64,000 nucleotides of DNA from contig CM119386.1 of NCBI GenBank assembly GCA_051294905.1, positions 3,162,001-3,226,000 on the forward strand, written 5' to 3'. The notes below the pieces were generated by a model. It was not told the DNA's origin. It saw nothing but the letters and a program-made list of their open reading frames with translations, and searched no databases. Positions 1-19,844 of this stretch are shown here, piece after piece (within the stretch, counting starts at the first letter, position 1; the number at the start of each line of letters is the position of its first letter). The translations under genes and the position numbers were made by a program. The stretch is from Botryllus schlosseri (Eukaryota).

Positions 1-222
1 CCACTGCTTAAATCTGATTTACCCATACATAACAGTGAATCCCGACGACGACACGCTTGGATGTAAGCTTGTGTTTCCGAACATTCTAGAGGGCGCTTTT
101 ATCTGAGCGATGGGTGTAAAGCAACTATGTCAAAGGGTGAAGCAACACACCACGCTCCCTCAAATGGAGGTCGTACAGATATGCATATGTCAAAGTGGGC
201 ACCAGCACCCGCTGGGGGTCAC

Positions 223-456
223 TGACCACGACCTAACATCAATCTCGCCTTCCGCCACATGTCACTTCATTTTGTCGCTTGCTTTTCATATTCTCTGCTT
301 TACTTTTCATTCAGTGTGCATGCCTCTTCTTTACTTCGCCTAGGCCAAGGTGTGTGTCTGATCTCAAAGACTACTCCAAGTTGTTTCGACACCTTCCTAT
401 CTTTTCATTGTCTCGCAGTTTTGTGGTGTTTTGAAATGATGGAAATATTAATAAAA
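223..456 (+). mobile_element. Short retroposon/LINE 3' end, family A (diverged copy)
   Basis: Shares TTTCATTCAGTGTGCATGCCTC..CGCCTAGGCCAAGG and terminal AATAAA with 4831-5104 and 23228-23497. Confidence 0.75.
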
Positions 457-504
457 CAGACTGATTGATTGACTATGAAATGGGCGATTGGCGGGCGCTG
501 GCTA

Positions 505-966
505 CACTACAAAAAAAAATTGGACAAATTTGGTCTCAAATTTAAGAAATGAGGATGATTTGGTCTCATTTTCAACGATTTCAGTCTCACTGATGGTCTC
601 ATTTTACCCACTCACCATAAATGCTATTTTCGACTCAGACAACCATATATATATTGATCTGAATAGTACGTGTGAATAGTAAGTGGCATGTACCTTGATA
701 ACTATATCTAGTGAATACCTTGTAAACATAGTACAGGATCGTCTCAACACTGCAATTTCTGGTCTCTCTCACCCTTCCCCTCCTACGCTCAGACCCCTAA
801 CACTGAAAGGGATGCCCCCAAGGCACTGCTACTATTTTCGATCAATTTCTGGCTTACTTTTGAGACATAAAGTACTTGGTAAGACTAATTGGTCTTTAAG
901 ACTTTTTTTTTGTAAAAAATCGATTTGAGACATTGAGACCAAATTTGTCTGATTTTTTTTGTAGTG
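505..966. mobile_element. CACTA/EnSpm-type MITE
   Basis: ~34-bp TIRs CACTACAAAAAAAAATTGGACAAATTTGGTCTCAA / TTGAGACCAAATTTGTCTGATTTTTTTTGTAGTG, TA on both flanks, subterminal GGTCTCA repeats. Confidence 0.8.
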
Positions 967-1687
967 TATAAATTGAGAGCTACAGTGGCGCTGATACTTG
1001 ACTTCTCGTGCAAGGGGCTCCAGCAGAAAATGTTTGGGACACACTATGCTAAAGAAACACAATGTAGACTAGTTTCAATAATTTTGCACTAGAAACCAGC
1101 TATAAGATTACCAAAGTCTCAAGGATTCCAATAATGTCTACAGATTACAGTAGCGGAGTGGCCTGTAGCTTATAATGAAAAATCATCCAACCCTTTTATC
1201 TACCGCCGTAGTATAGTTTATTGAACAATAATTGCAATCAGTATCTTTGCAGCAATGGGCCTACACTCGTTATTACCTCTTGCGCATATTTTGGTCAACT
1301 GTAGGCCTATGTATGTTGATGAATTATAAGGCAACACAGAGTTGGAAACTGTTTCTTATATAAAATAGAGTTATATTAATGATCAAGTAAAATGAATGTA
1401 GACTGAACAGCTGCTGCATATAGAAGTTGAAGAGCCACCGGCAGAATGAATACCGGTATCGATAACAGTAAACAAATGGCACCACTAGAGCTTGCTTGGT
1501 ACTTACCCCACCGGTTGTCTGACTAAATATATAAAGACAATTTTTCGCTTTTTCCAGGTTTTGATATATGTTTAATCAATCTCTTGGATTTTTTGCTATA
1601 TTTTACAAGCCTACCGGTCGACATTCATGGAGTTGTAGGGTATATGAGTTAACAATAATACGAGACGGCAGGAGGTGCGTGACTTAC

Positions 1688-1760
1688 CTTTGACGCCAAC
1701 TTCGAGCATTTCTGTGGGAATACTTTCGGCCATAGCAGAAGCTTCCAGTGGAGACAAAGC
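1688..1760 (-). CDS. Possible 5' exon of an unidentified minus-strand gene (MAESIPTEMLEVGVK...)
   Basis: Open frame between acceptor TTATAG and strong donor AAAG|GTAAGT; product not recognised. Confidence 0.35.
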
Positions 1761-2058
1761 CTATAAGTTTAGCGTCATCATATCATAATAAATAAACACT
1801 GCAAGACTTGGCGGGAAACCAGAGGTTGGCATTTCGTGACCGGTTCCGGAGCCGAAGTAAGAGCGGGGCATTATCACTGAACTGAATCAACAAACACTGA
1901 ATCAACATAACATTATCGATAGGGCATAATTTCGTCGATTTTAATCACTGAGCTATAGTCGGATTACATCCGGCTTTTTAATTTGCTTCGAACATTGGAG
2001 TTAGGATTTTTTTAGTGAAATATGGAAAAGAAGGAGGATTTCAGCAGGATTGTTCGGA

Positions 2059-2280
2059 CTCTGAATTGTAAATTCACCTGGCACATATTTTCGAACTCGA
2101 AAATCCGGATGGATTCGTGTTCCGAAAATTGAGAATTCAACCATCTCCGTGGAAAACTGTTAGAGATTTCTTGATTGACGAGAAGAGGTGAGCGGATATC
2201 TAAATTTCGGAATCAGAAGCCATCCAGCCCTTAGAAATTTAGAATCCGAAAAAACCGCCTGGTGAATTTCAAATTCAGAG
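2059..2280. repeat. Inverted repeat pair inside a GGATT/AATCC-rich MITE remnant
   Basis: CTCTGAATTGTAAATTCACCTGGC (from 2059) vs GCCTGGTGAATTTCAAATTCAGAG (2256-2280). Confidence 0.6.
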
Positions 2281-2525
2281 TACGACGGGGAAATCGCACT
2301 CAAATTATAGTAGTTACTCGATACGGGGTTTTCCGATCACCATGAAGTTTTAAAGCGCACGCTGAAATCTCTCACCTCCAAACCGCACCATCTGAATTTT
2401 CTGACACCCGTATCACAAATTTCCAAGCTCGCAATTTCTAGAATTCATTGTGTGTACCGGGGCTGTGCAGGTAAATTCGGTAAATTTTACCACCGACTCC
2501 AACTCCGACTCCGAACATTGTCAGC

Positions 2526-3087
2526 CAGAGATGAGCGGATTTGAAATTTCTATGTCCTAATCCAATCCAAAGCCGAATATTCAAATCCTAATCCGTGTCC
2601 TAATCCATAAATTTTGTATATTGCAAGATAGATAGATAGAGAGAGAGAGAGAGAGTCTTTATTTTCCTTCAAAAAACCGACGGCAATGATGATGGTACAG
2701 AAAATATGCACGCACACTTAATTTGCACAGTATTCGCTATCAAATAGGAATGATCAATACGACCGTGAAGGTCAACTATAGTCTGAACACGCCAATCCTA
2801 ATCCTATCCCGATATCAACTTGGAATTCCTCTAAGAAATCCCACATCTTAGGCCTATAATTCTGTAAAAATAAATCATAAAACGCATGAGTGCATAAGTG
2901 CATCAAAATACTTTGGTAGAATGAAAAACTTTGTCGCCATTCGCCACATGACATCAATCTCCCGTAAGTCGGTAAATCCAATCCTAATTCTAATCCATTG
3001 AAAAAAATCTGAAATCCTAATTCACTCCTAATCCGACAAAGTTTAACAAATCCGGTTCTCACAAATCCTAATCCATGCTCGTCTCTG
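2526..3087. mobile_element. MITE with CTAATCC subterminal repeats
   Basis: Imperfect TIRs CAGAGATGAGCGGAT / ATCCATGCTCGTCTCTG; many TCCTAATCC units; no clear TSD. Confidence 0.65.
2627..2793 (-). mobile_element. (CT)n-tailed short retroposon, family B
   Basis: GA-repeat tail then TCTTTATT (AATAAA on minus); homologous to 22968-23140 and 43066-43242. Confidence 0.75.
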
Positions 3088-3188
3088 ATACAGATTACAA
3101 CTCCGATTCCAACTCCCGAGTCGAACCCAACTGAAACGGCCGGCCTCGAGTCCAAATTTCAATGCATTTAGAAAAATGTTCATAAAAT

Positions 3189-3267
3189 CCGAACCACGAG
3201 ACTTGAACCGACACCCAGTATATCGCTGTAATCGTGAAACAGCCGCCTAACCAACTGAGCTACTCTC
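3189..3267 (-). ncRNA. tRNA-derived sequence (SINE head or tRNA pseudogene)
   Basis: Minus strand has A box TAGCTCAGTTGG, B box GGTTCAAGTC and stem GCTGT/ACAGC with a 9-nt loop; acceptor, D and T stems do not pair properly. Confidence 0.65.
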
Positions 3268-3553
3268 AAAGCGAGAGAGAAACAGGTGATGCCCCTATAC
3301 CAAGAAGTGTTCTCAACTTTTTGAAAATAAAAGAGAATTTGCTTCTTGAATTTGCGACTACGTCATACATAGACGTGCTCGGGATAGAATCATCGCCTGA
3401 CTGATTTCACAGCAATATCAGGATTCCAAAATGACCTGAGTGAGGTTCTTACGATAATACAATCGACTGTAACGACCGCTGATATACCGATGGCTACAGT
3501 TGGCTATAGCGCGATTGATGCCAGGCGTCTCGCATTCAGTGCACATACACGCG

Positions 3554-5220
3554 CCGCGTGTTATTGTAGTATTGACGACGCTCATTCAATGATTCAATTC
3601 ACAGTGCCGGACGCCGATGTATGTAATCGCTTCGTACGAGTTACTAAGTACTAGATAGTGCTTTATCGAAACACACCTTGCTCTTGTACAACAAGTAGAA
3701 ATGAATATATATTGGTTGGATTGACAGGTAGTCATATCTGCAATATAAAATGCAGTGTTTCACTGCTATTTTACTGGGCATTTGAAGAAAGATTAGGTCA
3801 TACGGGGCCTACGATAACTTATCGTAGGCCCCGGGTCATATTATGCAAGCCTTTCATCCACAATGGTGATGTAGACAATCGCTTTGAGACAAGGGCTGTC
3901 TATTGAACCAATAGGCATCCTGATAACCCAGCTATCACGACATGCGCATCACAGCAATCAGTTTCGAAGTGCACAACTCGACCGCCGACTCTACATACCT
4001 ATTTCTTCGCTAATTTGACAATGGACATTGAACATTCAACCATATTTAGGTTTTGTTCTCTACCATGGGCCAGATCTGAAACATTTTCACCAGAATTGAA
4101 GCCATTTACGGACATAAATTTTCTGTCATATCGATTGCGCTTTGGAGATCTTGTAGCTCGCTGAACTGAACACCATCATGTTGGTAATGCTGTATTAGTA
4201 TGAAAAGCAGCAATCGATATGCGTAATCTGCAACAGCGAATCTTCGCTAATCACAACAGCAAATATATTACCGCGTGTTATTGTTTGGGTGATAACATAG
4301 TATCGCGGACGTTGAAATGATTCATTTCACAACGCCGGTATATGTAATCGCTTGTCCATCCTTTGTACGAGTTCGTGCCATGTGTTGAAACTAACATTGC
4401 TGTTGTACAACACGCACATCGCAGCAATCAGTTTCGAAGTGCGTTCGTGACCGCAGACTCTACATACCTCGATCCGCTAAATTGAAAATCGACATTCAAC
4501 CATATTTTTGTAAAGTAATTTATTGCGTGGCGCAATATATGCCATTGGCTTTGCTGGTCGTCAAATTTTCATGAATGACCTGCGCGTTGTGGACGGAAAT
4601 CTCGAGCAGACACGAAAACACCTTTCAATACCAGAATCGCGACTGGAGCTTTGATGTGCCGGTACATTTCGTTTTATTCGCTAGGCTACTACGGGAAAGA
4701 CGTGAAACATTTTCACCAGAAGTGCAGCCATTTACGCACATAAATTTCCTGTCATATCAATAGCGGAGATCTTGTAGCTCGCTGAACAATTACTACTGAG
4801 CAATTACTACTAAATAAATACAGTCCATCCTCAAGATTACCGGACCACGACTGACCTATCGATCTCGCTTCCAATGACATGCCGCCCTATTTCTTGTCGC
4901 TTTCTTTTTCTATACTGTATTCTTTACTTTCATTCAGTGTGCATGCCTCCTCTTTACTACGCCTAGGCCAAGGTGGGTGTCCGATTCCATTGACAAATCC
5001 AAGTCGCTTCGACATCTTCCTGTCTATTCATTGTATCGCATTTTTTGTGGTGTATTGAACTGATAAAATTGCTAATAAACCAATGATGATGATGATGATG
5101 ATGATGAACAACATCATGGCAGTATTGGTGTATTAGTATGAAAAGCAAAAATATTCAATATGCGTAATCTTCAACAGCAACAGAAAATACATTGCTAAAA
5201 CCCGCGCATGTTATTTCGTA
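3554..5220. repeat. Diverged tandem duplication (units ~3554-4270 and ~4271-5200)
   Basis: Collinear shared blocks: CGCGTGTTATTG, GCAATCAGTTTCGAAGTGC, GAAACATTTTCACCAGAA, GGAGATCTTGTAGCTCGCTGAAC, TATTAGTATGAAAAGCA. Confidence 0.75.
4790..5104 (+). mobile_element. (GAT)n-tailed short retroposon, family A (young)
   Basis: AATAAA plus (GAT)n tail; TSD TGAACAA at 4783-4789 and 5105-5111; nearly identical to 23228-23497. Confidence 0.85.
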
Positions 5221-5959
5221 AAATATTTTTACTTTCAGTTCAAATAATCTTCTGTGCGACTAATTATTGATTATAAGTATTCCAATAGATGGGCAATGGG
5301 CATAACCAACGCATGTTAGGAGAAAAGATCTGCAAATGAATTTGATGTCTCGGCGATGCGCTGATTTAGGTCACGGGCGCTGGTTTATCTCACGCGCGCA
5401 CATTCACGCGAACGCCGTGGCGAATTGTATTTTGCGCAAAACGTTTTTATGTATTCAATCTGCATTTTGAACAGGCTATTCGATAGTATAAGATGTTATT
5501 TATGGCTCGACGTATGCGTATTGATAATAGCTATCCATCTGTAATAGTTGTAATTGTCTACGACCAGAACAACCCAGGAAATTTTGGATTAAGTAAAGCG
5601 TGTTCGTGAAAATACGCTCAGTTATCATTAATGAGTATGCCGTTTCGACCGCACCGACTCCTACTATTTTCCTCACAGAACTCCGACTCCAAGAATACTA
5701 CAAATTTACTTCGAAAATTATATATGTCACAAGTGAAGGTTTAATGACTTTCATATAACCATTAAACATATCCAAACATATTTTTCACGATGGTATCCAG
5801 AATTGTTTCATTGTGGCATAGCTCTCAATACTTACTGCACAATTAACATGGAAGTTTTAATTTAGAAATATTCTTCATTTTTTCATAAGTTTTTATAACA
5901 TATAGACAAGCCACGGATATTCTCTAATATTATATAAATCATTCAAACATGTTATATAT

Positions 5960-6400
5960 TAGGCTTACCATACGTCCTCTTTTAAGAGGATTTGTCCTCT
6001 TTTTTGACTTTTTTGAAAGTGTCCTCGGAGGACGCCCTTTTGTCCTCTTTTTTGAGATTTTGTCCTCTTTTTTTAGGATTTAGAGCAGATTTAGAGCCAA
6101 TTGCAAGTGATATGCCGCATACTAGCACAGAATTGAAGCTCCGAAGGGTGAAAAACGGTGATTTTAGCTCTGAGCGGAATGATGACCTTTTTTTTTTTTA
6201 ATCATCCACCTAGCAATGTGGAGTGGAAAACGTTAATCTGAGATCTGAGCTGAAAAGATGACCTTTTTTTTTTTTTTTTAGTCAACCGATCACAAAGTGG
6301 GCGAAATTAACCGATTTTTGAGAATTTCACTGCGGTTTTGCAATTTGCAAATTTCTGAAAAAGTGTCCTCTTTTTTGATTTCCAAAATATGGTAAGCCTA
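5960..6400. mobile_element. hAT-Blackjack-like MITE
   Basis: TIR TAGGCTTACCATA / TATGGTAAGCCTA; perfect 8-bp TSD TTATATAT. Confidence 0.9.
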
Positions 6401-6603
6401 TTATATATCCCATCCTGTATAATTAAAATGTGGATAAAAACAATATAGTGTAGCTCTTGTACATGAGTCAGCAAATAATACAGAGATGTACAAATTTTCT
6501 CACTACACACTATATTCTGATTCAAGCACACGCTCTCTCACGACAAATAAAACGGTGTTCAGAAACGAAATTTAGGGAGTAGTCAAATAGCATATGTCTA
6601 CAT

Positions 6604-7735
6604 CAGGGGTCACCAACACGCGGCCCGCGAGGTCCTATTTTGCGGCCCGCGACCTGATTTGAAAAAATTTCAGAAAAACGCTTAGTAAATCATTTTGAAA
6701 CGCTGAAACATAATGTTGTTGTTGTTCATAGTAATCCATTCTACTGTGCCCAATATCACTATTCCTCACTAGTAGGTACGGCTTCGGCATGGTAATATCA
6801 TTCCATGGATGAAGAATTTGCTGGTACGAATGGGCATATTGCCTTGACGTGCAATGGCCCCACCACTGCCAAGACCGAGACGCTTGAAAAACGACTTCGG
6901 GCTCTCCAAAAGACCATGCTTTACGAGGAGATAGTTGTCTAGCAAGTAGGCCTATACCGTGTCTAGCTAACCCCAATATTGATTCTTTAATCCAGGGGTG
7001 GCCAATCTGCGGCAGTAGAAGGGCAATTATGCGGCTGTCGACACTTTTAATAACTACCCTAAGTTTTCGAAGATACACCCTGCATCAGCTCTATCGGTGA
7101 ATCTGATCACATTGGCCGAGAAAGGATAAATATTTTATAGTAATAGGTGAAACTATACTAATATTTATTGACGAAATTCATTCATGAACATGAAAATTTT
7201 TTCGCGCTTCGCGCGTCTACTGAACGGTTTCCTGTGGCTCTTTACAACATAACTACTAACGCATAGTAAGCCAATATGCGTAAATAGATTAGTTCGGAGT
7301 GTACCGGCAATGGACAGGGACAGTTTAACGTGGGTATTTGGCCCCAGTTAGTTTATCGCGACTAACCACCGGTATGCGGCCGCAGGCTACATGAGTGATC
7401 GAAATGCGGCCGTGAATAGCAAAAATGTTGGCCACCCCTGTTTTAGCGGCTACAGAGTGTTGTCAGGTATCGTGTACAGCTCATAGTTCAAAATATAATG
7501 AAATTGATGATACTTTTCGTTGTATTTGTGTTTGTTCAATAAAATATTATTTCTTTTGTGGTGACTATAACAGTCGCGCATGTTAGAGAGCACAGCATTG
7601 TAATAACGTGGAGTTATCAGACGTGGTTATTGAACTGCGTTGCCTACTTTTATCTCGATATTGATGTCATGCGGCCCGCGGCCTCTAGGAATTTGGAAAA
7701 GTGGCCCGCGACCCATTTTGAGATGGCGACCCCTG
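6604..7735. mobile_element. hAT-Charlie-like non-autonomous element
   Basis: TIR CAGGGGTCACCA / TGGCGACCCCTG, GCGGCCCGCG subterminal motifs, TSD GTCTACAT/GTACACAT (6/8). Confidence 0.8.
6993..7440. mobile_element. hAT-Charlie-like MITE nested in 6604-7735
   Basis: Perfect 13-bp TIR CAGGGGTGGCCAA / TTGGCCACCCCTG; TSD degraded. Confidence 0.8.
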
Positions 7736-8182
7736 GTACACATGCACTTAGTCAAGTATCCCTAGACTAGGACTATACTTGCACTCTTTATATTTGTTGA
7801 ACCCAAGCGACTGAGATACTTATTTTATAATAAGAAATATATTACATTTTGGCAAGTTGGAAGCAGCACTTTACATTTCACAACCGATGTTGTCCCTTTT
7901 AAAACCACACGATTTATTAACTCTTTCACAGTATCATAACATAATCCCAAAAATTCCACCAATTTGTGACCGCATCGTCGATTTTGCGTTAATCACGAAG
8001 ATGCATCTTGCAATGTTCTTCCTCTAGTCTATGCAATTGAATTGCAATTTGCAAATAATGGCAATTTATCAATATCGTTATCAATAACAGTGATTGTTGG
8101 TACAAACAAATCCTATTTTATTTAATATGAGTAATTTCAAGAGACCTGTGAAAGCACTTGCATGCTTTCATATTAAACAAGT

Positions 8183-8344: not shown

Positions 8345-8899
8345 GTGCCTACATTGTTTTGTTTTTATAATTATATGGGACAGATTTAGGTCGAACCACT
8401 GTTGTACTGTTATTACATTAAATATTTCTTTGCACATCCACTTTCGTGTCTTGTATAACACCATCTAACCAAATGCTTTTTTGATGGAAGATCCTGTAGC
8501 GCCTAAATCATCGTCCTCGCATTCGCGAAACCTATTAGGGTATTTGTTTCTTCATTTATTTAATTTACTGAAATTTGAACGATTTTCAATATGTCCAAGT
8601 CTGGCAGCCATTAGTAGTCGCCGAAAAGGTATAACACCATATGACAGATTGACAGCATCTATGAACAGAACGATAGATGGAGACTATGTAATATATTAAA
8701 TAGCGATGATTTCGCGAATCGAGAATAATAGTTATATTCACATTCATCATTTATATTGTCCACGAGCTCCGTATTACTCCTAACGATGCGCTTTAGGAGT
8801 ATCTCGGTCCGATAACGGTACGCGGCACAGCATTATATTGTAGGCTACTCTCGAAACAAGCTTTTCCTACCGCACTCGAATTTACTTTTTTCGATTGAC

Positions 8900-9554
8900 T
8901 CAAAATTCAGATTTTATCGCAGGAGTTTGTTGGAACGCTCCTTCCAGCTTGTGTTTGCAGTCCGAAAGTGGACCCTTGCCAAGCTTAACTACGAACGCAA
9001 CAGCACATATAGCGCATAGCGCGACCGGCATAGAGGCCGCAAAAGAAACAATCCCTAAAGACATCGCGAACAAGATGAAATGCATTTGGTCCGGGCATAT
9101 CAAGTCGTCGTCCGGAATACTTCTGATTTCTTTGCTTATGACCGCGTTGTGCCTATTGAAAGGCGTGGCGCAATACGTACCAAGGTCCTCGTTATTACCG
9201 AGTTCTCTGTTTATACGTTCGACAGTGGCGTTGTTGTATTGTTTGTCTATCAACACTCGCGGACTTGCATCAAGCAATATCCCTCTTCGCGATATAAACC
9301 AAACCAGCGGCAGTAAGTTACAATCGCAGTTAATGGGGTTGCCGAACAGCCACATGGCTTCCAATCTCGGCACGTAGGATTCGTCGATCTCGAAATTCGA
9401 TCTGGTCACTTCCCACGTGAATTTCAGCGAATACGGCGATACCGAAGGCTCGCCTATCGCCAACGTTGTGAGGGCGCATCCTTGCAAAAATAGAAAGCGT
9501 AGACGGCGCAGGTTTAGGAAAATGACGCTTGGGAGGCTTTCCAAATACCTATTC
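8900..9554 (-). CDS. LRR-TM gene exon 5 (last LRRs, LRRCT, TM, tail, stop)
   Basis: Acceptor TTTCAG; GNPINCDCNL..TYCATP..LICP, hydrophobic helix, ends KSEF*. Confidence 0.92.
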
Positions 9555-12500
9555 CTGAAATAGAAAAGAATAGTTTGTCATCCATACATTTGTGATTACG
9601 CATGAGATAGTCGGTCAAAAAATCGAAATCTTTTTAGAGCTAAGATTAAAATTGTGGTTATGCATTAACTGAATTCCTAGAACTATACAAGCGACAGTGC
9701 ACATATAGTAGGCTGAATAGGCAGGGCAATCTGATAGTAACTATAACTGCGGTACGAGACTATAGCTACCCATTTTTCCATGCCATGTATATTACAGTGG
9801 TTGTGGCCTGACACTGACGCAAATCCTATCACCGCGTCGTTCCGAATTTCGCATTGGTATTTTTGAATGTCACAATTGATTGTGGTCGTTTTTCGTGTTC
9901 CAGTAGTGCCATCAATGGTTATTTGTCAAGTTTCTTTTTTGTTTATTTGGATGTTCATGACTTGAATGTGGGAGCGAGTAGCGCGTGGAACGAGCCAGAA
10001 GAACAGTAGAATTACCTATACAGCATAAGTTTTCTTCACATTAATATACCAATTCGTATAATCGTGTAACAGTAACAATGTACGAGGATATGTACTGGCT
10101 TCTCCGGTGTTGTCAATGGGCGGACTGGCATCCACCTGGCAATGTGGAGAGAAAAACGTTATTTTGAGCATTGAGCGGAAGTGATGACTTTTTTTTTAAT
10201 TTTTTTTTTATAGTCATCCACCTGGCAATGTGGAGAGAAAAACGTTATTTTGAGCACTGAGCGGAAGTGATGACCTTTTTTTTTAGTGAACCGATCACGA
10301 AGTGGGAAAAATTTACCGGTTTTTGAGAATTCTTCTCCGGTTTTGCATGTCTGAAATTTCTGAAAAAGTGTCCTCTTTCTACATTTCCAAAATATGGTAA
10401 GCCTAACCATATGCCTTTAGTGATGTGGACTCTGCTGTACTGTACAGTTGAAAAATTGCAAGCTGTCAGCTGTGTATCATCGTAACTCCGTTACGCTACC
10501 ATTTTTCGTGGTACCATATTGCAAATATTTCTTTGCGCTGCCGTTGACTTGTTTCTGATTTCCAGTTGGATTGAAGAACGTAACAGTTTCAGTCTTTATC
10601 TATTTTGATTCTGCATGCACAAAAGACCTTCTAATCGAACCATCCCGCACCCATTAGCCGTTTATACACGCTTTCTATTGCATTCATTCAGGACGATCAA
10701 TTCGTAATATTAAATGTGCAGTTATTGCTCCACGCATCATCAATACATCACAAGGGGATGCGGTTTTGAATTATTAATTATTAATATGTTGGGATGGCAT
10801 TTGGTCACTATTATTCGAAATGAAGAGAAAAATTTAACGACTCGAGTATAGATTGCTTAGCTAGCCAGTATCGATTCAATCAACGCGATGGATGGAATAT
10901 CGACGTTCCTTGAATGCAAAGTCGATTTCATTAGAATTTAGAATCCATTAAAAGCCCACTTTCGCAACTGAACATGAACATTGAACATGTGTCTAGTAAA
11001 AATAGGGTAAGATTACAAAAATGGCGGCTTCCTCACGAACGCAAAATGCTTGGCTCAAGTGAATAATGTATATATCCTGTGAATGAAAAATATTGCGCGA
11101 AGCTAGTTAACGCGCAAATTAACTTGTAGCGACGCTGTGTCCTCTTGGTGGGCCCCACGTAAGCCTATACGTTGTAAGAGCGATATGTCGCGTCGCAATT
11201 TTAAAGCCTTCTCTGACCGGTGATTATGTAGGTCAGCAGACGATACGTAGCACTGAATACTGTGCAGATATCATGCTCTCCGAATCAAAACTCGGTAGCT
11301 TCGGTAATCAAATAATTTAGTAAGTAATCGATCTAGTCTAGAGCATTTTTCTTAACCTTTTAGCGATCGTATCCTTGTCTACAATGACCGACGGAAGTTT
11401 TCCGTTGTGATCATGTTGATATCCTCACTATGAAATCATGGCACAAAACCATTCCGTTCGTGACTCCTAGCGCTGGTCAAAATCGAGTACCTGAACTAGT
11501 CAGTGCCTTCTGCCTTCGTGTACCACTAGCACAGGGCCAGTAACCTTTTGTGTGCAGTGTGCCAAAATGTCAAAAAATGTCATATTTTTATCAGCTTTCA
11601 TGCCAAACATTCAATTTATTGTTAATATTCAACTTTTCAAGCAAGGAATACCATGCACCATCCGTTTTTCTGCAGCTGGCAACGGCATCCGTTACGCCAG
11701 TGATCTTAAATTATTATTGGTAGCGAAGGGAATAAATTTTGGTCGCTACCGCAGCCGCACCCGACTTATCGCTTACGTGTATGTATTATTTACATAATTT
11801 ATTTTCAGTCGCGCAATGATCGATCTTCTGTGGTAGATTTGGTCGTTTCCAAGTCCACTGTGTTCGGTTCCATACAGGGTTGTAATGACTCGAGTCATGA
11901 CTCGACTCGAGTCAAACTCGAGTCACAATTTTCTGATGACTCGAGTTGACTCGAGTCATTTTCTCAAAATACGGAAATGAGTCGACTCGACTCCAGTCAA
12001 TCTGTGTATTGACTCGACTTGGACTCGAGTCATCGCGCATGACTCGAACCAAGTCATATGACTCGAGACTCAGACAGCCAAGACCGACATTTCATTGTAA
12101 TTTCGAAGACTAGTAAGGTAATCACACTATCGGGATTTCGTCTATTGGTACTGGTATACTTGAAAATGCGACCAGAAACTGCTAAAAGTGAGGAAAATTA
12201 GCATATTATAAATTCGAACCATTCGATATCACCAAACAGAGTTATGAAAAGTGGCTTTAACAAGACTTTTAACTGGAAACTGAGCAGTCAACACAATGAC
12301 TTGGACTCGGACTCGAGTCACAATCCCATGACTCGGACTCGACCCTCTGCTCGATGACTTGGACTCGGACTTGACTCGGTGGTGAATTGAAAATGACTCG
12401 ACTTGAATCGAGTCAAAACTATAAAAGTGAGATTGACTTGTGACTCGGAGCCATGTGACTTGGTTACAACCCTGATACAATATCCAATAAGTGACAGGCC

Positions 12501-15500
12501 AATCAGTGTTGTCACAATGATATGGTCTGGTGTTGATGAAAATGTGCCCACTACTGTATCATTCAAGTTGGTTCGGTGTCACATTCAGGTTGGTCTGCAG
12601 ACCAACATCATGACACTAGAATTGTCTGCAAATGTCGCGGTAAAGCGGTATACATTGTGGTTGCTCCAGATAAATTTGGATCGCTTGCTCACCAGACGAA
12701 ACTAAAAGAATATCTCCTTCCGAGATTCCAAATTCGCATTTCGACATGAGCTCATGATTTTTCTTGGTAGGTCTCATTTGATACGTGTGGCTCAAGCTGC
12801 GGGCGCTGGACTATTCGGCGTTGGTCACTTCGACGCCTTGACAGTGGACATATCAATGTCGAACGTTTTGGCCGGCATGCGGCGGTTATTTTGTCTCATG
12901 GTTTTATCGCCAGTGTCGCCACCGATCATTTTGGCAACACATACACCGCACGGGAGTCGCATGTTGTCCGAAACTTTATGTCTAGGTCGCGTCTTCTATA
13001 GCGTGAAAATTCCCAGCGCCGGAATGCTGGTTCATAAGTTGCGCTCCCGTAGGATGCACAGTGAACACTTCTAACATTTTCTATATGCATATTTATTTAT
13101 TGGGGGGTTCCCACATTATAATCAAGACATAAGGTTCCAATAAATCGCGCTTCAGTTTTAGTCTTAAATTAATTTCAAGATAAGTCTTGCCCTAAAAGAC
13201 TGTTTTATGTTGATTTACGAAAAGATTTTGGATAGCCTACGAGCTTTGTGCATTTTGAAAACGTCTGTTTCACTTTTTGCAAAACATATAGTCTCAATAT
13301 GCCGTTTGCGTGAAATCATTTGACGTGCCATGAAAAATCATGTCGCGTGCCACAAATGGCACCCGTGCCGGGGTTTGTCGACCCTTGCACTTGTATATTA
13401 CCACCCGTATGTCACGTGTTTGAATACACACAATCTTTTCGCTAAGAGTATACCCCAGTAATCGGTAGAAACGGAAGCTCACCCGTGCAGGTATATCGTG
13501 TCCATCATCACCGTGCGCGAGAAGATATCCGACGGGAGACTGAACAGACTGTTGCTGGACAAATCCAACTCGCGGAGTTTCGTCATGCTACGGAAAGCGT
13601 CTGCGTGAATGTCCGCGAGACCGTTTCCGCTCAAATTCAGTAATTTGACGTTGGGAAGGCTTCGGAGGTTGGCTGAGCTGACGGTGTTGATGTTTCTTAT
13701 TTCGTTGCGGCCCAAATCCAAGGTTTCAATCGTTTGCGGGAGTTCGCTTGGAACTGAGCTCATCTTATTCGCAGATAATCTAAATCAATCGGCATTAGTT
13801 AATGCGCCTGGGTTCAGCGCAGTGTAATATTGATGCGCTGGATTAGGCTCGCTGTCCACATGGAACAAAGGAAACCGTGGATCTATTTATTCGTGCTTGC
13901 AACATCAAGTACGAACCATCCATTAATGCAGTAGGCGCTTGCCGAAAGCACTGACCGACGGGCCTTATTGTCTCGCTTTTACAGAATCTACATTCCACAT
14001 TAAAAGTGCTGCATAAAATTAATTCACAAATACACAATTCGTCGCTGGTAGTAAAAATAATAATCAAAGCATAAGGTAAAACATCGCTATAGGCGGAATG
14101 GCGACAACATCATTACTAATTCCAACACAGTCGAAATATAGCGATGGGCATTGGGCATAGTGCGAGTTATTAGGCCTCTACTTCCGCAGCGTTGTTGTAT
14201 ATCAAAGCATCACTCTCTTTGAAATGTATACTAATAGCCATTCTGATAATTATGTTTAGCAACCAGCGGAAAATACTGTCAGCGGTGATATTTTCTGATT
14301 GTCAGAATCCGCTACACCGTTAATACTAAAAAACAGTAGGGTTACCATACGACCTCTTTTAAGAGGATTTGTCCTCTTTTTTGACTTTTTGAAAGTGTCC
14401 TCGGAAGACGCCTAAATGTCCCTTTTTGAAAATTTGTCCTCTTTTTTGAAAATTTTGATTAATTACAGGTCAAAATTCGACTGAGATATAGGAAATCAGT
14501 ACTCAAGTAACGTTCCGGCGGGTATTTCGGGAGTTGAAGCGGAAAGTCGACCTTTTTTTAGTCAACCAACGGAGAATTCAACAAAAGTGTATATTTCTGG
14601 AGTGAAGTCGGAAAAATGACCATTTTTTAGTCAACCAATCACGAAGTCGGGTAAAATTTACCATTTTTTCCGGATTTTTCTCCAGTTTTGCAAGTCTGAA
14701 TATTTTGAAAAAGTGTCTTCTTTTCAGATTTCAAAAATGTGGTAACCCTAAACAACTGAGACTGATTTAAATCCAAATCAAGTAAAAGCCAATACCTGAG
14801 AGTATGAAGTACCGATCGCCGATGAAAAATATTCGACGGGAAGCTTTCGATGAAATTGTAGCTGAGGTCCAGCACTCGTAATTCTTCCAGTTGTCGCAGA
14901 GCTCTTTCTTCCAACGTTCTGATCTCATTCCCACTTACATCCAGTGACTGTAACCACCTATTAGTCAGCAAATGGTCTGCAATTAGAGATATAACGCAAC
15001 AAGCTCTCTGCCAATGAGCATCACCCTTTCATATGCATCGTGAAAGGTCAGGTCGACATGACATATCGATCTCGACAACCGTCACATGGCACCTCATTTT
15101 GTCGCTTATCCTTTTACAACTTCTTTTACTTTTCATTCAGCGTGCATGCATCTTCTTTACATCGCCTAGGCCCAGGTGGGTGTCTGATCTCAAAAACTAC
15201 TCCAATTCGTTTCGACACCTGCCTATCTTTTCACTGTCTATACGTATATGCTCACTAGTCACTGCCCATCCGCCCCCTTAAAGAGGCCTTTGGTCGAAAG
15301 TGAACGGCTTTTTACTAAGTTTATAAAAAGTTATTTGAAAAATATCCCAGCGATGAAACGTATGGCAAGTTTTTTATGAATGCAAATTTCTAATATATAA
15401 TGGTTCATAAGCCGCATGCGAACGCTTATACACATACCCTGATAGTCATAAGCCCACTATAGTTCCTGTAGTCTAGTACAATGCTTCTTATTCCATGAGC

Positions 15501-18500
15501 GCAGTACACGACAATGTTTTCAAGGGTATTAATGATCGGTGTTCTGTAATTGCAGTATTCTTGGACATACAATCCGCTTACGATATGGTCTGGAGAAAAG
15601 GTCTCTTGTTCAAATTGACGAAGCATGGTGTCAAAGGTCAAATGCTACATTGCATCCACAACTTTACGTCAACGCGTTATTTCCAAGTCGGGAATACTAG
15701 CTCATTTCATGCACCAGCAATATAGTAATGTACACGTCAGCCATACAAAAATGATGGACTTTTCTTTTTCAATTTTAATAATTCTTACTAAAAAATACTC
15801 CATAATCTATTTCGATTTACGGTATTATTTTGGGGGGTTTGGGGTGCCGCAATTACGGCCCTGAATCTGTATTAGATGTGCATTGTGGTAGGTTTTTATG
15901 ACCCGGCGATGATTTGAGGTTCCACGAAGGGTTGCAGACTAGCATAAGTGTTCAGCAGGTTAGTAGAGGATAAGAACTGTCGTAGGCCCCGAACCACTGT
16001 ACTAACACCTATACCTACACCTATATGCTGGTATTGCAAACCCCATTGCCTGTCCTCTTAGAAATCTATTTTGAATAGCCAGATCGATAATACTTCATGA
16101 GAGGCCGACTATACAGGAGATGCATTAATGTTTGCTCTTAGACATATATCAATTTGTATTTAGTCAATTTCCATCTTTCATTAATAATAAATGATTGGAA
16201 TGTCAGGCCGTAATGCGTATTTGAAGTTAGGTTATATATATTATTTAGATCAGTAAGTGGTAGCCTATAGCCTACTTACGACACGAACCATTACCGGTAC
16301 GATAGAAGTGTGGTATATCGACATTGACAACATAGTGAGTGCATTTTCTGCATACCGTAATCCCGCCAAGCTGTATTCTTCTACATTCGGCCCGATTTCG
16401 TTTCTCGCGAGATTAACCTCCTCGACGTTATGCAAAGTTGTAGTGAAGTGGTCGGCGTGCCGAAAGCAAGCCGGCATTTCGTGAAGATGATTATCTGTCA
16501 GAAAAAGTATAGTTGGCAACGCACAGCAACTAATGATAACTCTAAGCGTTGCTCGTAAGATATAAATTCGCTAAATGGGATGCTGACACGAGGCTTGCTA
16601 ATGATCCTGCTTTATCGGCAGCCTAATCTAGCTCTACATCAGTGTTTATTAACCGGTGTTCCATGGAGCACTGGGGTTCCAGCAGCCAGTCTCAGCGGTT
16701 CCCCTGGAGGTCGATACATACACTAAACTCTTCTTGGCCACATTGGTGGCTGGTAATTATGCCTGATAAGTAGGGCAAGTTTTTGCAACTGTATTTTTTA
16801 CAGCTTACGACAGCGTCGTAGATACTCAGAATCTATGTACTATGATGTTTCAAGCTGTTTGAAGGGATTTTATAGTGCAACTTTTTGCAGCTTTTCTCAA
16901 TTCTTCATACCCAATTTTTACTGCAACTTTTATCAAATATTGCGTAAAAATGTAAAGGAATGATTTAAAAACAGGCTTTAAAGATAAACTATTTATAGTA
17001 TAGTTCTATTCTCTTTGATTTGCATAACAAAGAGTTATATTATGGGTTAGCAGCATCTCACTATCTATGACACAATAGTTTGCAAGCAAGAAATTCAACT
17101 CCCCTGCCAAGCATGAATGAGCCCGGACAATATGTTAATAAATCGCGTTATTAATTATGTCGTGTAAATTTGAGATAGTTTCCCATTTCACGAACGCCCA
17201 GGCGAGACCAACGAAAATAACATTTTCACTAGGTCATCTTTCTAAGACTATTTATTTTGTTAAAGTCGCTAGGTGTGAGTTTTTCTGGAACGCCTTGGGT
17301 CAAGTTTGCAGACCTAGGGGCTTTGGGGTGCGTTACTTGACTTGTTTTAGTAGGAAGGGGTTATCGCTATGATGTTTGGCGTATGGGGGGAAATTATGCC
17401 CGCATTGTGTAGGCTTACTTGCTGTGTACCGGAAAAACTGTAATTTTTAGGCGGTCCAGCCAGAATGTCCGTGAAATGGCAAAGTGTCAAATTTGACAGC
17501 CCTGCAGAAACTAGGCTAAACAACGAAACCTTTCGGGTACCCAATACCCTAATAATTGAACAAAAATTATAAATGCAACCCTTTACTGCAACTTTTTTCA
17601 AAATTAAATGCAACTTTCTCGCATTTTTAGTGCAACAAAAACTTGCCCTACTGATAAGTCTAAGTCTTAGCCTATAATTGTGAAAGTTACGGTGTTATTT
17701 CGTCGAAACCCCTTACTTCTGAAATATAAATTCTATCTCCAATATTTATAAGCTTATTTGCAACTAAGCAATTGAAAATGTGGGGTTCCGTGAAGACTTG
17801 TAGATTAGCGTGAGTGCTCCTCGGGTTAGTTTAGGGTTACCATACGTCCTTTTTAAGAGCATTTGTCCTCCTTTTTTGACTTTTTTGAAAGTGACCTCGG
17901 AGAACGCCCGAATGTCCTCTTTTTTGAGATTTTGTCCTCTTTTTTGCTGGAGCGAGATACAGTAAATCAGCACTGAAGTCATATTCCGGCGGCTATTTCG
18001 GGAGTTGGGCCAGAAAGTTGACCTTTTTTTAGTCAACCGACCACGAAATGGCAAAAAATTGCCATTTTTCAAAAGTATCCTCTTTTCAGATTTCCAAAAT
18101 ATGTAACCCTAGGTTAGGTAAGGTTAAAAACCACTGGTATAGATACGTGTACGATATCTATACGGGCATTTGCGTGTTTATTCGCTGTTTTAACCTTGTT
18201 TTAGTCATTTCACATCGGATGCAAACCATTGACTTTGCCATCTCCGTAGAGTCATCGCTTTATTACGGGAAATTACAAATTCCGATTTCAAATTATCAAA
18301 CCCCTGGCCAATGTCGGATCTCCGGGTTCACAACTTTAGGCGATGATACCTGGCCAGGATGATTTGGAGACCCGGCCCTATAACCTCATGGATATAAGTG
18401 TAAGTGAAGTATAATATCAATTTGATTTACCTGACAAATCGACATATTTGAGGGGCGAATTGATCGTGCTGCTGTTCATGGCCGTCATATTGAAAGCTGA

Positions 18501-18794
18501 CGGATGGATAAAATCAATGTGGTTTCCTGACGCGCTGACTTTCTGGAGGCTTGTAAAGAGTCCGAAATAGTTTACCGGCACGTTCTCAAGGCTGTTGTTA
18601 TCCAAATTCAGAATTGTCGCCGTGCCTTGCACCTCGCCAAACATGGGAACCTCCTGCAATTGCTTGGAACTGCAATCGATTAGCTTTCCCGAAACGCAGC
18701 TGCATTGGCCGCATGTATAATTATAATCGGCACCAACGTGAAATGCGCTCAGCAAGAACAGTGCTAAATGCAAAATCGTCTGTATTCTCCCCAT
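8900..18794 (-). CDS. LRR type-I transmembrane protein, 538 aa, 5 exons (signal peptide, LRRNT, LRR array, LRRCT, TM, short tail, no TIR)
   Basis: Exons 18794-18431, 16494-16356, 14957-14796, 13779-13483, 9554-8900 (1617 nt). All introns GT-AG with phases 1,2,2,2. Junctions rebuild LRR motifs: VDLS|DNHL, AGLR|WLQSLDVSGN, HTLR|LSANKM, IYLHG|NRYLESLP. Confidence 0.9.
10129..10405. mobile_element. hAT-Blackjack-like MITE, 3' half with ~86-bp tandem duplication
   Basis: Ends TTCCAAAATATGGTAAGCCTA like 5960-6400; unit CATCCACCTGGCAATGTGGAG... at 10129 and 10215. Confidence 0.75.
11875..12474. mobile_element. GACTCGAGTC-repeat MITE
   Basis: TIR CAGGGTTGTAA / TTACAACCCTG; dense GACTCG/CGAGTC subterminal repeats; homologous to 63499-63987. 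Confidence 0.85.
13321..13387. mobile_element. Charlie-like terminal fragment
   Basis: CGCGTGCCAC..GGCACCCGTGCC..GTCGACCCTTG resembles a hAT-Charlie end; partner end not found. Confidence 0.4.
13483..13779 (-). CDS. LRR-TM gene exon 4
   Basis: ETLDLGRNEI, KLLNLSGNGL, RELDLSSNSL; acceptor GATTTAG, donor GG|GTGAG. Confidence 0.92.
14337..14750. mobile_element. hAT-Blackjack-like MITE
   Basis: TAGGGTTACCA / TGGTAACCCTA; TSD AAAAACAG/AACAACTG (6/8). Confidence 0.85.
14796..14957 (-). CDS. LRR-TM gene exon 3
   Basis: WLQSLDVSGNEI, RVLDLSYNFI; acceptor TAATAG, donor AG|GTATTG. Confidence 0.9.
15052..15245 (+). mobile_element. Family A retroposon 3' end (diverged)
   Basis: TATCGATCTCG, TTTCATTCAGCGTGCATGC and CGCCTAGGCCCAGG shared with the other family A copies. 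Confidence 0.7.
15495..15720 (+). pseudogene. Non-LTR retrotransposon reverse transcriptase fragment
   Basis: VIAVFLDIQSAYDMVWRKGLLFKL..GVKGQMLHCIHNF..RYFQV matches the LINE RT LDxxxAYDxVW region. Confidence 0.8.
16356..16494 (-). CDS. LRR-TM gene exon 2
   Basis: DNHLHEMP..VEEVNLARNEI; acceptor TGACAG, donor CG|GTATGC (phase fits exon 3). Confidence 0.85.
16771..17650. mobile_element. hAT-type MITE (young)
   Basis: Perfect 15-bp TIR TAGGGCAAGTTTTTG / CAAAAACTTGCCCTA; perfect TSD CTGATAAG. Confidence 0.9.
17832..18111. mobile_element. hAT-Blackjack-like MITE
   Basis: TAGGGTTACCATACGTCC / ATGTAACCCTA; TSD GGTTAGTT/GGTTAGGT. Confidence 0.85.
18431..18794 (-). CDS. LRR-TM gene exon 1 (signal peptide, LRRNT, first LRRs)
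   Basis: MGRIQTILHLALFLLSAFHVGA signal peptide; CGQCSCVSGKLIDCS LRRNT; donor TCAG|GTAAAT. Confidence 0.92.
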
Positions 18795-19358
18795 CGAAGT
18801 TATGCGGAGTCGTCAATCATACGCCGCTATAGCAATTGAGCTTTAGGCAACTGCTCGCGATTCGGAATAATTGATCTGAATCAAAGAATAGATGAAAGTC
18901 ACGTCAATTAGCAATGACACGGGTTTAATCCACCATCGTGTGGACACATCTGCTTCAGAAGCCCCCCAGAACTTCGGTTTATCATCATGTGGGGGGGGGG
19001 GCAAGACCAACGTTTTGGGGGGGGGCTGACGAAGTGCTGTTACGGCCCTTTTCCTCCCCACATGTATAACATAGGTGCGGACGTAGGTTATCTTATATAA
19101 CGGCGGATTACAACTGTCCTACCTCAATGTGAAGAAAATCAGATATCGAGCCTGGCGCTCAGCATCAAATTTCGCACATATAATACAAGCATAGGCTACC
19201 TCTGTAAGATACAATCGAAGTTGTTACTATAATACATATTAATGGTAAGTCGAAAACTGGAATATTGGTAGAGTTGAATATATTTCAGTAGGCCTATTCA
19301 TGCAAAGTTACGAAACAATTTCATGTCACTCTGAGTTCGGCTCACTCCAACTGGCGAT

Positions 19359-19844
19359 TAGGGCTGGGCACAATGATTCGAGTACTCGAATCTGAATCGA
19401 TTATTAATTTTAATGATTCGAGTCGAGTAGTACAAGATGATTTTTTCGAGTACTGAAATTATACGCTCCTTGCAACAGAAAGTTAATTTACTAATGAGAA
19501 TTATACTTTCCATACTATTTTCCACTGCGAAAGCCTTGAAACCTTGACTGGCCGTGTTGCAGCAAACGAGACATAGCATAAAAGCTACGAACGTTACTGG
19601 AAATAACACATTTCCGAAGTCATGATCACCCCACAACATTCTTAAGAAGTGCAATGAAACCCGTATGGTCGAAAGAATACCAAAGTATCTTTAATGTGAC
19701 GGATAACAGGCAATATGTTCTTTGTGGTGACATAAAGTTCAGTCTGCTGTTACGTCATAATGAGTAATACTCGAATACTCGACTCGAAGCGGAATACGTC
19801 ATTCAGAATCGAATGACTTAGGTACTCGAATTTTCCCAGCCCTA
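19359..19844. mobile_element. hAT-type MITE with GAGTACTCGA repeats
   Basis: TAGGGCTGGG / CCCAGCCCTA; TSD CTGGCGAT/ATGGCGAT; inverted homologue at 62380-62878. Confidence 0.88.

Follow-up and report, generated by a model that had tools for sequence, protein, structure and literature searches.

Toll-like receptors (TLRs) combine about 20-26 leucine-rich repeats (LRRs) with LRRNT and LRRCT caps, one transmembrane (TM) segment and a TIR domain, and RP105 (CD180) shares their type I LRR ectodomain, the caps and the single TM segment but lacks the TIR domain; RP105-type proteins are defined by descent from TLRs and by an MD-1/MD-2-like partner. In ordinary LRRCTs the spacing between the CxC motif and the next cysteine amounts to about 20-29 aa. 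A further set of described proteins, namely LRRC26/52/55, GPV/GPIb-beta, TPBGL and LRTM2, are small LRR-LRRCT-TM proteins with short tails which are subunits of larger membrane complexes, whereby the BK gamma subunits possess about six LRRs, a family-specific TM segment and a polybasic juxtamembrane sequence. LRRTM1-4, synaptic proteins of vertebrates, join an LRR solenoid of 10 repeats and a TM segment to a PDZ motif, the conserved -ECEV end, and their genes were reported to be absent from tunicates (PMC3933685). From Ciona, TIR-less "TLR-like" LRR-TM genes were documented, and the same work concluded that these genes are not TLRs (PMC12816324). It is common for LRR-TM proteins to lack signalling domains, and the result reported here is mainly a clean annotation of one such gene.

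The gene in question was identified in the window, i.e., the whole stretch of 64,000 nucleotides of Botryllus schlosseri DNA that was analysed, and is an ordinary gene, though unstudied and without an entry among the annotated proteins, of an uncharacterised sea-squirt family. Its product, 538 aa long, is a type I membrane glycoprotein that has a cleavable signal peptide, one LRR solenoid and a single TM helix. It is probable, though by no means assured, that this intact single-copy tunicate LRR-TM gene, whose product is devoid of a signalling domain, encodes a co-receptor or adhesion subunit which binds a partner. The original prediction had proposed a complete five-exon model of 538 aa, which was re-derived exactly (minus strand, ATG at 18794, stop codon 8902-8900, five in-frame exons with GT-AG borders), and each described element, comprising the signal peptide, the LRRNT, the LRR array with its inserts, the enlarged LRRCT and the TM segment with Pro and Cys, was located in the sequence where it had been placed (Table 1).

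Table 1. Features of the LRR-TM gene; coordinates are those of the window
Feature	Coordinates	Strand	Properties
Coding exon 1	18431..18794	-	364 nt, end phase 1; includes LRR1-2 and LRR3 start
Signal peptide (exon 1)	18729-18794	-	aa 1-22
LRRNT Cys cluster (exon 1)	18672-18713	-	Cys 28, 31, 33, 41
Insert 1 (exon 1)	18453-18497	-	AFNMTAMNSSTINSP; two N-glycosylation sequons
Coding exon 2	16356..16494	-	139 nt, phase 1 to 2; LRR3 remainder and LRR4; donor ACG/gtatgc
Coding exon 3	14796..14957	-	162 nt, phase 2 to 2; LRR5-6 and LRR7 start; acceptor aatag/GTGG
Coding exon 4	13483..13779	-	297 nt, phase 2 to 2; LRR7-10 and LRR11 start
Coding exon 5 with stop	8900..9554	-	655 nt; LRR11-13, insert 2, LRRCT, TM, tail
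Insert 2 (exon 5)	9374-9454	-	GEPSVSPYSLKFTWEVTRSNFEIDESY
LRRCT (exon 5)	9095-9328	-	Cys 397, 399, 449, 474
TM helix (exon 5)	8987-9085	-	aa 478-510 (33 aa); Pro497, Cys501, Cys504
Tail (exon 5)	8903-8986	-	28 aa
S-E-F (exon 5)	8903-8911	-	C-terminal residues
Stop codon	8900-8902	-
First polyadenylation-type hexamer	8559..8564	-	ATTAAA; 335 nt past stop; candidate 3' end

Pfam LRR_8 was identified above cut-off on exon 3 (E = 6e-9) and exon 4 (E = 1.7e-14), while the LRR_8 and LRRNT matches of exon 1 were weak and exons 2 and 5 gave zero Pfam matches, the LRRCT being unrecognised; the ten longest other ORFs in the window likewise yielded no Pfam match. The exon 1 and exon 2 regions match residues 26-141 and 139-192, respectively, of the Styela protein P0002. 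In run X3, one RNA contig spans 14796-14955 and continues across a splice into exon 4 (junction 13779/14796), with CT..AC ends that correspond to GT..AG on the minus strand; exon 4 is covered by RNA contigs from runs X1 and X3, which belong to two studies, and sequence words of exon 5 and of the 3'UTR occur in several probable RNA runs. In the contigs and runs examined, exons 1 and 2 are without RNA cover, and the raw-read RNA runs X19 and X23 gave zero reads on all exons, their signal falling on intronic repeats only. Transcription of the gene is low-level. As LRR_8 is found on exons 3 and 4, the exon structure recurs in Styela and a spliced RNA contig exists, the gene is real and intact and goes well beyond a chance ORF.

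The protein comprises 13 LRRs, and the CxC-to-C spacing of its LRRCT is 49 aa, i.e., some 20-25 aa are additionally accommodated between the CxC motif and the third cysteine, which according to structure prediction would be mostly helical. KLGK follows directly after the TM segment, and the tail is without recognisable domain. Structures were predicted for the exon 5 translation (AlphaFold2) and for the Styela orthologue (pLDDT 75 and 82, respectively), in both cases resulting in an LRR solenoid with caps and a TM helix. Within the exon 5 model, helices were assigned to the LRRCT insert, insert 2 reached a pLDDT of about 50, and the TM helix was placed at residues 156-192 of the translation, hydropathy giving 157-189, which corresponds to aa 478-510. 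A sequence profile search of the PDB, Foldseek searches (PDB, AFDB clusters, Swiss-Prot) and the ESM Atlas revealed generic LRR/LRRCT matches only, the best sequence and structure matches being a mixture of IGFALS, LRRC15, chaoptin, LGR4, LRIG1, Leptospira LRR proteins and Slit; the check by homology and structure prediction that had been proposed thus returned generic LRR proteins beyond the tunicate family described below.

The closest full-length relative was found in Styela clava (XP_039252965, 549 aa, automatically named podocan-like or platelet glycoprotein V-like), which is 42.8% identical and colinear over the whole length. The Styela gene possesses internal exons of 139/162/297 nt and intron phases 1,2,2,2, as does the Botryllus gene, it is the reciprocal best match on all five exons, and both genes form a clade with a support of 100/99; the branch leading to the Botryllus gene is long. 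Judged by these comparisons, the gene is the orthologue of XP_039252965, and the clear orthologue backs the verified model of a gene that annotation had missed. The neighbours of the Styela locus, a 391-aa gene and a Band_7 gene, are absent from the window. A phmmer search against 1.84 billion representatives returned 25 matches, 10 of them at E <= 1e-10, and every named one is a tunicate protein; with exon 5 as query, P0001 was 91% and the Styela protein 49% identical (E = 4e-52 over the C-terminal module). Besides Styela, the named relatives are LOC143468651 of Clavelina lepadiformis and H2XJT9 of Ciona intestinalis. All three names are automatic and none of the proteins has been studied; the Botryllus gene is thus not orthologous to any well-studied LRR-TM gene. 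A homology search starting from the Styela protein gave generic LRR proteins and returned neither the Botryllus protein nor its family, and the literature searched for the accession numbers and for tunicate LRR-TM families contained nothing on the family of this gene. The family thereby defined is small, appears so far to be restricted to tunicates, and stands out by the length of its LRRCT and the conservation of its TM helix.

The hallmark of the family is an LRRCT-TM module of the form WLFGNPxNCxC ... LD ... C..P.NR...V.G ... CP ... GI..F....P, and its invariant columns (W, N, P, 4 Cys and N-R, as well as G, F and P in the TM segment) are all present in the Botryllus protein. The mean majority-residue frequency is 0.56 for the TM segment, 0.50 for the LRRs, 0.62 for the LRRCT and 0.31 for the insert, whereby column identity figures of the TM segment are inflated by its hydrophobic composition. 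G, F and P of the TM segment do not vary, and L and I hardly do, across members which are only 25-30% identical overall. The Styela orthologue shares with the Botryllus protein both inserts, the long LRRCT, the conserved TM segment and the internal exon sizes, whereas Clavelina and Ciona lack insert 2. As compared to the Styela, Clavelina and Ciona relatives, the Botryllus protein has a shorter N-terminus and a tail that is 16-19 aa longer.

The original prediction had suggested a lineage-specific recognition co-receptor or adhesion protein, for which a count of paralogues and the diversity of the concave face were thought to be informative. In its own genome the gene is single-copy and accompanied by one very divergent paralogue, concave-face positions are 43% and the remaining positions 38% identical to Styela, so that the concave face is not hypervariable, and the transcribed allelic differences comprise 6 synonymous and 1 non-synonymous change; the alleles thus look as if shaped by purifying selection. 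A lineage-specific recognition receptor is therefore not favoured. From the architecture alone, the LRR solenoid would be expected to bind an extracellular or cell-surface partner, and a signal would pass laterally via another membrane protein, which would give the protein the role of a co-receptor or adhesion subunit. Because the TM segment is about as conserved as the ectodomain, the gene is single-copy and its alleles appear purified, a conserved endogenous partner would be favoured over fast-evolving pathogen recognition. If the conserved TM segment marks a fixed membrane partner, the family would give access to a receptor complex that only tunicates, as the invertebrates most closely related to vertebrates, possess.

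A more specific version of such a role assumes that the protein assists a channel or a receptor of several subunits as an auxiliary component held mainly by its TM segment, comparable to LRRC26/52/55 for BK channels and to GPV for GPIb-IX-V. The TM segment, being as conserved as the LRR core among the 25-30%-identical members, and the very short tails of all family members would fit such a subunit, as would LRRC26, LRRC55, TPBGL and LRTM2, which the C-terminal model matched structurally, and language-model neighbours such as LRRC52 and GP1BB. These matches are however generic and of low score (TM-score 0.3-0.4, Atlas scores under 0.9). With 13 LRRs the protein is far larger than the BK gamma subunits with their six, where these subunits have a polybasic juxtamembrane sequence it has only KLGK, and in comparison with the whole group the protein has far more LRRs and a longer, different LRRCT, while its TM segment and tail share no significant sequence similarity with the LRRC26/GPV group. 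Moreover, the TM segment diverges fast between close relatives: relative to P0001, 7/33 residues are changed in the TM segment and 4/28 in the tail, but only 7/153 in the ectodomain. This makes a TM interface under tight constraint less convincing for the preferred reading as well. The auxiliary-subunit reading is unlikely. It is similarly unlikely that the protein branched off the tunicate TLR lineage as a TIR-less form which modulates TLR signalling, as a decoy or co-receptor like RP105/CD180. The caps, the LRR ectodomain and the single TM segment of the TLR type are present, and the sole LRRCT of the own genome outside the family whose alignment takes in the full length of the cap is that of a TLR gene on contig C13, where it lies directly upstream of the TIR exons (hhalign probability 96.5%, E = 9e-10, 91 columns), with a CxC-to-C spacing of about 47 aa as against 49 aa. 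For the Styela orthologue, the better-scoring PDB and database hits furthermore include TLR3, TLR13 and TLR8, and TIR-less "TLR-like" genes are documented in Ciona. Yet the LRRCT resemblance is weak (26.8 bits, E = 1.3e-3) and confined to the capping motif, the best hits by sequence and by structure are a generic mixture, the 13 LRRs of the Botryllus protein fall short of the TLR number, kinship in sequence or fold to TLRs and RP105 does not extend past generic LRR likeness, no TIR remnant was found past the TM segment, and the Ciona genes are held not to be TLRs by the very report describing them (PMC12816324). The caution which that report implies for counts of "TLR-like" genes in ascidians is shared here. 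As had been predicted, TIR, Ig and FN3 domains are all absent from this complete LRR-TM protein: a genome scan with PF01582 found TIR on contig C13 only and none on the chromosome of the window, and tblastn of the own-genome TIR exons against the window gave nothing under E = 0.69, so that the window holds no TIR. Since the proteins of relatives and orthologues likewise end shortly past the TM segment, the TIR-less architecture is taken as ancestral within the family.

The proposed PDZ-binding tail was taken up in a further explanation, which assumes an adhesion molecule of the LRRTM or synaptic type, anchored by docking of S-E-F to a putative class I PDZ scaffold. S-E-F does match the class I pattern [S/T]-x-hydrophobic, and P0001 has exactly the same final eight residues, TPAIKSEF, while 4/20 preceding tail residues differ. 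A loose end of this kind is, however, expected by chance in roughly 1/20 C-termini, as estimated from residue frequencies, and S-E-F is kept in P0001 only: the Styela protein has the acidic end -SEDED, the two relatives of about 50% identity the likewise acidic -SLSDD (P0148) and -SLSED (P0149), more distant members finish either with an acidic -EKED/-DDNN/-EKEE or with -KKQD, and the last residues of the Ciona entry are ...KTKFG. The motif thus resides on an extension of about 16-19 aa past the ancestral C-terminus. LRRTMs do combine LRRs, a TM segment and a PDZ motif, and LRRTM2 was among the structural matches, but tunicates have no genes for these proteins (PMC3933685), and whereas their repeats number 10 and their -ECEV end is conserved, the Botryllus protein has 13 LRRs and an S-E-F that is unconserved even among orthologues. 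This explanation is accordingly rated as quite improbable. This extension is young and lineage-specific, and as relatives of about 50% identity lack it, the PDZ idea is weak; the extension may or may not have gained PDZ binding. Rated lower still is the combined view that the family is a tunicate-specific TLR-ectodomain offshoot which lost its TIR domain and now serves as TM-coupled accessory subunit of a conserved receptor complex, the ancestral acidic end having been overrun in the Botryllus lineage by the extension with its new PDZ-type end; if true, it would mean that the anchoring of an old receptor was rewired, with a docking motif born via a stop-codon change. Finally, a decaying or silent gene copy without function would explain the very low RNA signal, with none on exons 1 and 2, and the long branch, but is hardly credible given that all five exons are open, the splice sites canonical, the exon structure conserved with Styela, a spliced transcript present and the allelic changes predominantly synonymous (6:1). 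The partner-binding co-receptor or adhesion subunit is the preferred reading.

Regarding the exon borders, the alternative donors GTAATG (16294) and GTAAGT (16279) look strong, but neither can be joined in frame to an acceptor at 14976, and phase-matching alternative donors near this border are poor (e.g., GTGTCG). Alignment with the Styela protein placed the donor at 16355 and the acceptor at 14957, and with these borders the frame and the 538 aa were restored. The junctions of exons 1-2 and 2-3, which lie outside the RNA cover, were accepted because sizes and phases of the orthologous exons are identical. All four introns had been placed inside the LRR core; three of them indeed cut LxxLxLxxN, whereas the second (after R168) coincides with a repeat boundary. 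The modular shuffling that had been linked to this arrangement is formally possible for exons 3 and 4, which are symmetric (phase 2-2), but exon sizes are frozen in comparison with Styela. At the 3' end, the hexamer near 8560, formerly read as AATAAA, is actually ATTAAA, and further hexamers follow at 8126 (ATTAAA) and at 7918, the latter being the first AATAAA.

The five open minus-strand pieces which the original prediction had joined into one gene are all present in the sequence, and most of their borders are clear (see table). The non-obvious junction is that between the second and third exons (E2/E3), where the strongest-looking donors, GTAATG (16294) and GTAAGT (16279), allow no in-frame join with the acceptor at 14976 and the other phase-matching options near these positions are few and poor; it was resolved by alignment to the Styela clava homologue. 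The resulting coding sequence (364+139+162+297+655 = 1617 nt) has only GT-AG introns and encodes 538 aa plus stop, exactly the length proposed before. The signal peptide, LRRNT, LRR array with inserts, LRRCT, TM and tail were likewise all recovered, and the placing of introns inside LRR core motifs stands for three of the four introns, which cut LxxLxLxxN, but not for the second, which lies at a repeat boundary. The hexamer near 8560 that had been read as AATAAA is ATTAAA (8559-8564), the first AATAAA being found at 7918. A 160-aa open frame antisense to E5, found without support, is probably a by-product of the codon usage of the coding strand.

Coordinates of the gene, its protein product and associated features (positions in the window, in the protein where marked aa, or on C-numbered contigs of the own genome, the window itself lying on C16)
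Feature	Position	Detail
E1	donor 18430	clear
E2	acceptor 16494; exon end 16356	acceptor clear; donor ACG/gtatgc from Styela alignment
E3	exon start 14957; donor 14795	acceptor aatag/GTGG from Styela alignment; donor clear
E4	acceptor 13779; donor 13482	clear
E5	acceptor 9554	clear
Signal peptide	aa 4-22	hydrophobic N-terminus; cleavage probable after VGA22
LRRNT		Cys cluster C28-x2-C31-x-C33-x7-C41
LRRs		13 repeats
N-glycosylation		six sequons
Insert 1	inside LRR2	AFNMTAMNSSTINSP
Insert 2	inside LRR12	GEPSVSPYSLKFTWEVTRSNFEIDESY
LRRCT	aa 397, 399, 449, 474	cysteines
TM	aa 478-510	33-aa hydrophobic segment; P497, C501, C504
Tail		KLGKGPLSDCKHKLEGAFQQTPAIKSEF
Antisense frame	8895-9377 (+)	160 aa
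Intronic repeat	10304-10409; 14336-14754; 17850-18103	introns 4, 3 and 1; 74-85% identity
Upstream repeat	19220-19400	begins ~560 bp upstream of ATG
Acidic open frame	40643-41032	130 aa
TLR-type cluster	C13:3075887-3094359	three tandem TIR-bearing genes in ~18 kb
Further TIR match	C13:1766589-1766690	
Paralogue L004	C16:10421718-10422173	tail only ~7 residues after TM
350-aa LRR frames (examples)	C11:19521481-19522026; C3:21184183-21184722; C1:15470814-15471356	intronless

RNA mapping covered exons 1-4. A 375-nt contig of run X3 spans the 13779-14796 junction with ends CT..AC, i.e., GT..AG on the coding strand, which proves that the E3-E4 transcript is spliced; it does not quite reach the modelled E3 acceptor, ending two bases before it. 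Exon 4 carries a contig of run X1, which comes from another study, and 8-38% of the words of E5 and the 3'UTR are present in several probable RNA runs. Within the mapping of exons 1-4, two raw-read runs gave nothing on the exons and exons 1-2 had zero cover, hence the gene is expressed weakly or in a restricted way. Seven exonic positions distinguish the transcribed allele from the window, six by synonymous changes and one by N265K, which is the pattern that purifying selection gives; that the gene is dead is therewith highly improbable, its scant RNA cover standing beside a spliced transcript. Five exon 4 variants (13575, 13620, 13650, 13668, 13704) are common to the X1 and X3 contigs, from two different studies, which suggests a common second haplotype ~2% off the assembly.

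A phmmer search with the E5 translation against 1.84 billion representative proteins gave 25 matches at E <= 1e-3, 10 of them at E <= 1e-10. These comprise P0001, a 214-aa fragment from an SRA assembly (91% identical), Styela clava XP_039252965 (549 aa, with 49% identity across exon 5 and the automatic names 'podocan-like' and 'platelet glycoprotein V-like') and, next in the list, a Clavelina lepadiformis protein of 553 aa and Ciona intestinalis H2XJT9, together with several further unnamed members. Such relatives mark the genome as that of a tunicate. Over their full lengths the 538-aa model and the Styela protein are 42.8% identical, and the alignment takes in the long LRRCT as well as the two 'atypical inserts'. 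Mapped on its own locus, the Styela gene has five exons (421/139/162/297/631 nt, phases 1,2,2,2), of which the three internal ones equal those of the window gene in size, with introns at the same residues, and on this match the two junctions without RNA chiefly rely. Searched against the window genome, the Styela protein finds its best matches in the five exons, in their order, and in a maximum-likelihood tree built on the C-terminal module the window protein, P0001 and Styela form a clade (support 100/99) within a looser group of Clavelina, Ciona and two unnamed members. The gene is conserved, as one gene, in two tunicates of stolidobranch grade. No flanking genes are common to the window and Styela loci, which is usual in ascidians and was also noted for TLR loci (PMC12816324). 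Over the last ~150 residues, alignments A1 and A3 reveal an invariant skeleton (W-LFGNP-x-N/x-C-x-C, L-D, C..P.NR...V, C-P) and invariant G, F and P inside the TM; column by column, the majority residue has a mean frequency of 0.62-0.63 in the two LRRCT halves and 0.56 in the TM, against 0.50 for the LRRs before them and 0.31 for the LRRCT insert. The window protein belongs to a tunicate family that has no name, and a literature search found no paper citing its accessions.

Pfam LRR_8 passes its cut-off in exons 3 and 4, its hit in exon 1 is weaker, and the LRRCT is without Pfam recognition. AlphaFold2 modelling of the E5 translation (pLDDT 75) gave helices in the LRRCT insert and insert 2 as a low-confidence loop; in the model of the orthologue from Styela (pLDDT 82, pTM 0.78), 13 strands form one solenoid that is capped at both ends and followed by a long TM helix. 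Foldseek and sequence searches of solved and predicted structures returned a generic mixture, including Slit domains, Nogo receptor, VLRs, LGR4, LRIG1, LINGO-1, LRRTM2, Leptospira LRR proteins, TLR3/7/8/13, RP105, LRRC15, IGFALS, LRRC26/55 and TPBGL; no PDB profile match extends into the LRRCT second half or the TM.

The gene is transcribed and spliced, and its product is an LRR protein of surface type that lacks an intracellular domain. It is favoured, with moderate confidence, that it acts as a co-receptor or adhesion subunit, like many TIR-less LRR-TM proteins: the LRR solenoid would bind a partner, while signalling or anchoring would depend on another membrane protein. The defining features of the TLR, LRRTM and LRRC26 families were tested and found lacking, placing the protein outside all three. 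The predicted TIR absence was borne out, as a Pfam TIR scan of the whole own genome (495.5 Mb, 219 contigs) gave four matches, all on contig C13, tblastn of the C13 TLR-cluster TIR exons against the window gave none, and all full-length relatives end 13-20 residues past the TM; a window free of TIR and short-ended relatives together argue that the TIR-less architecture is ancestral to the family and not an annotation gap. Derivation from a TLR, yielding an RP105-like regulator, is considered quite unlikely. The sole non-family LRRCT in the own genome that aligns to the family profile over the whole long cap is that of a C13 TLR gene, immediately upstream of the same gene's TIR exons, with ~47 residues from CxC to the next Cys (hhalign: probability 96.5%, E = 9e-10); with a weak match of 26.8 bits, this putative TLR link is a lead only. 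A possible membership of the RP105/CD180 type would build on this weak LRRCT resemblance to one own-genome TLR. Ciona TIR-less 'TLR-like' LRR-TM genes are known from earlier work, which distinguishes them from TLRs (PMC12816324). A specialist would not find the window gene surprising. Within the C13 cluster, the copy at 3094030-3094359 has the unusually long LRRCT CxC-to-C spacing seen in the window family; stop codons in two of the four TIR matches may be introns or broken copies.

A PDZ-anchored adhesion molecule of synaptic type is improbable. The predicted S-E-F end does fit the class I pattern, and the last eight residues of the tail are kept in P0001, but the Styela orthologue (...LSLSEDED) and other relatives end otherwise, two ~50%-identical ones in ...ISLSDD and ...SSLSED and more distant members in -EKED, -DDNN, -AED, -EKEE or -KKQD. 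The window tail, ...GPLSD-CKHKLEGAFQQTPAIKSEF, overruns this ancestral acidic end by 16-19 residues, and the motif is therefore young and lineage-specific. By our own estimate, about one in 20 termini carries the class I three-residue pattern by chance. Tunicates have no LRRTMs, the classical LRR-TM-PDZ proteins (PMC3933685). An auxiliary subunit of a channel or complex, held by its TM, is unlikely; the TM has its invariant residues, yet window and P0001 differ at 7/33 TM and 4/28 tail positions vs 7/153 in the ectodomain, and this faster change tempers the TM-interface argument.

A lineage-specific recognition role, as originally proposed, is not favoured. Concave-face variable positions are not more variable (43% identical to Styela vs 38% for other non-consensus positions, Fisher p = 0.56), the own genome holds one further copy of the C-terminal module, a very divergent paralogue at C16:10.42 Mb, and the allelic differences are biased 6:1 towards synonymous; nothing in these points to a rapidly diversifying recognition receptor. 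The paralogue, L004, has lost the NR and CP motifs, and an LRR exon lies ~1.2 kb upstream of it. Dispersed over many own-genome contigs, none in the window, are at least 25 intronless LRR frames, nearly always exactly 350 aa and ~33% identical to Styela protein residues 160-342; such uniformity of length in frames so widely scattered suggests an LRR family of retrogenes or one borne by a transposon.

Window 1-8000 and 19500-64000 held no other recognisable protein-coding content, and the ten longest other open frames, the acidic one included, had no Pfam match; the LRR gene seems to be the sole clear gene in the 64 kb. One short interspersed repeat recurs in three introns, and only those of its copies that sit in introns 3 and 1 fall within the mapped stretch; RNA contigs and raw reads pile up on these very deeply, with many chimeric joints, which indicates that the element is abundantly transcribed elsewhere in the genome. 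The second highly represented repeat, upstream of the gene, reaches an RNA contig depth in the thousands, with many loose ends at 19357-19359.
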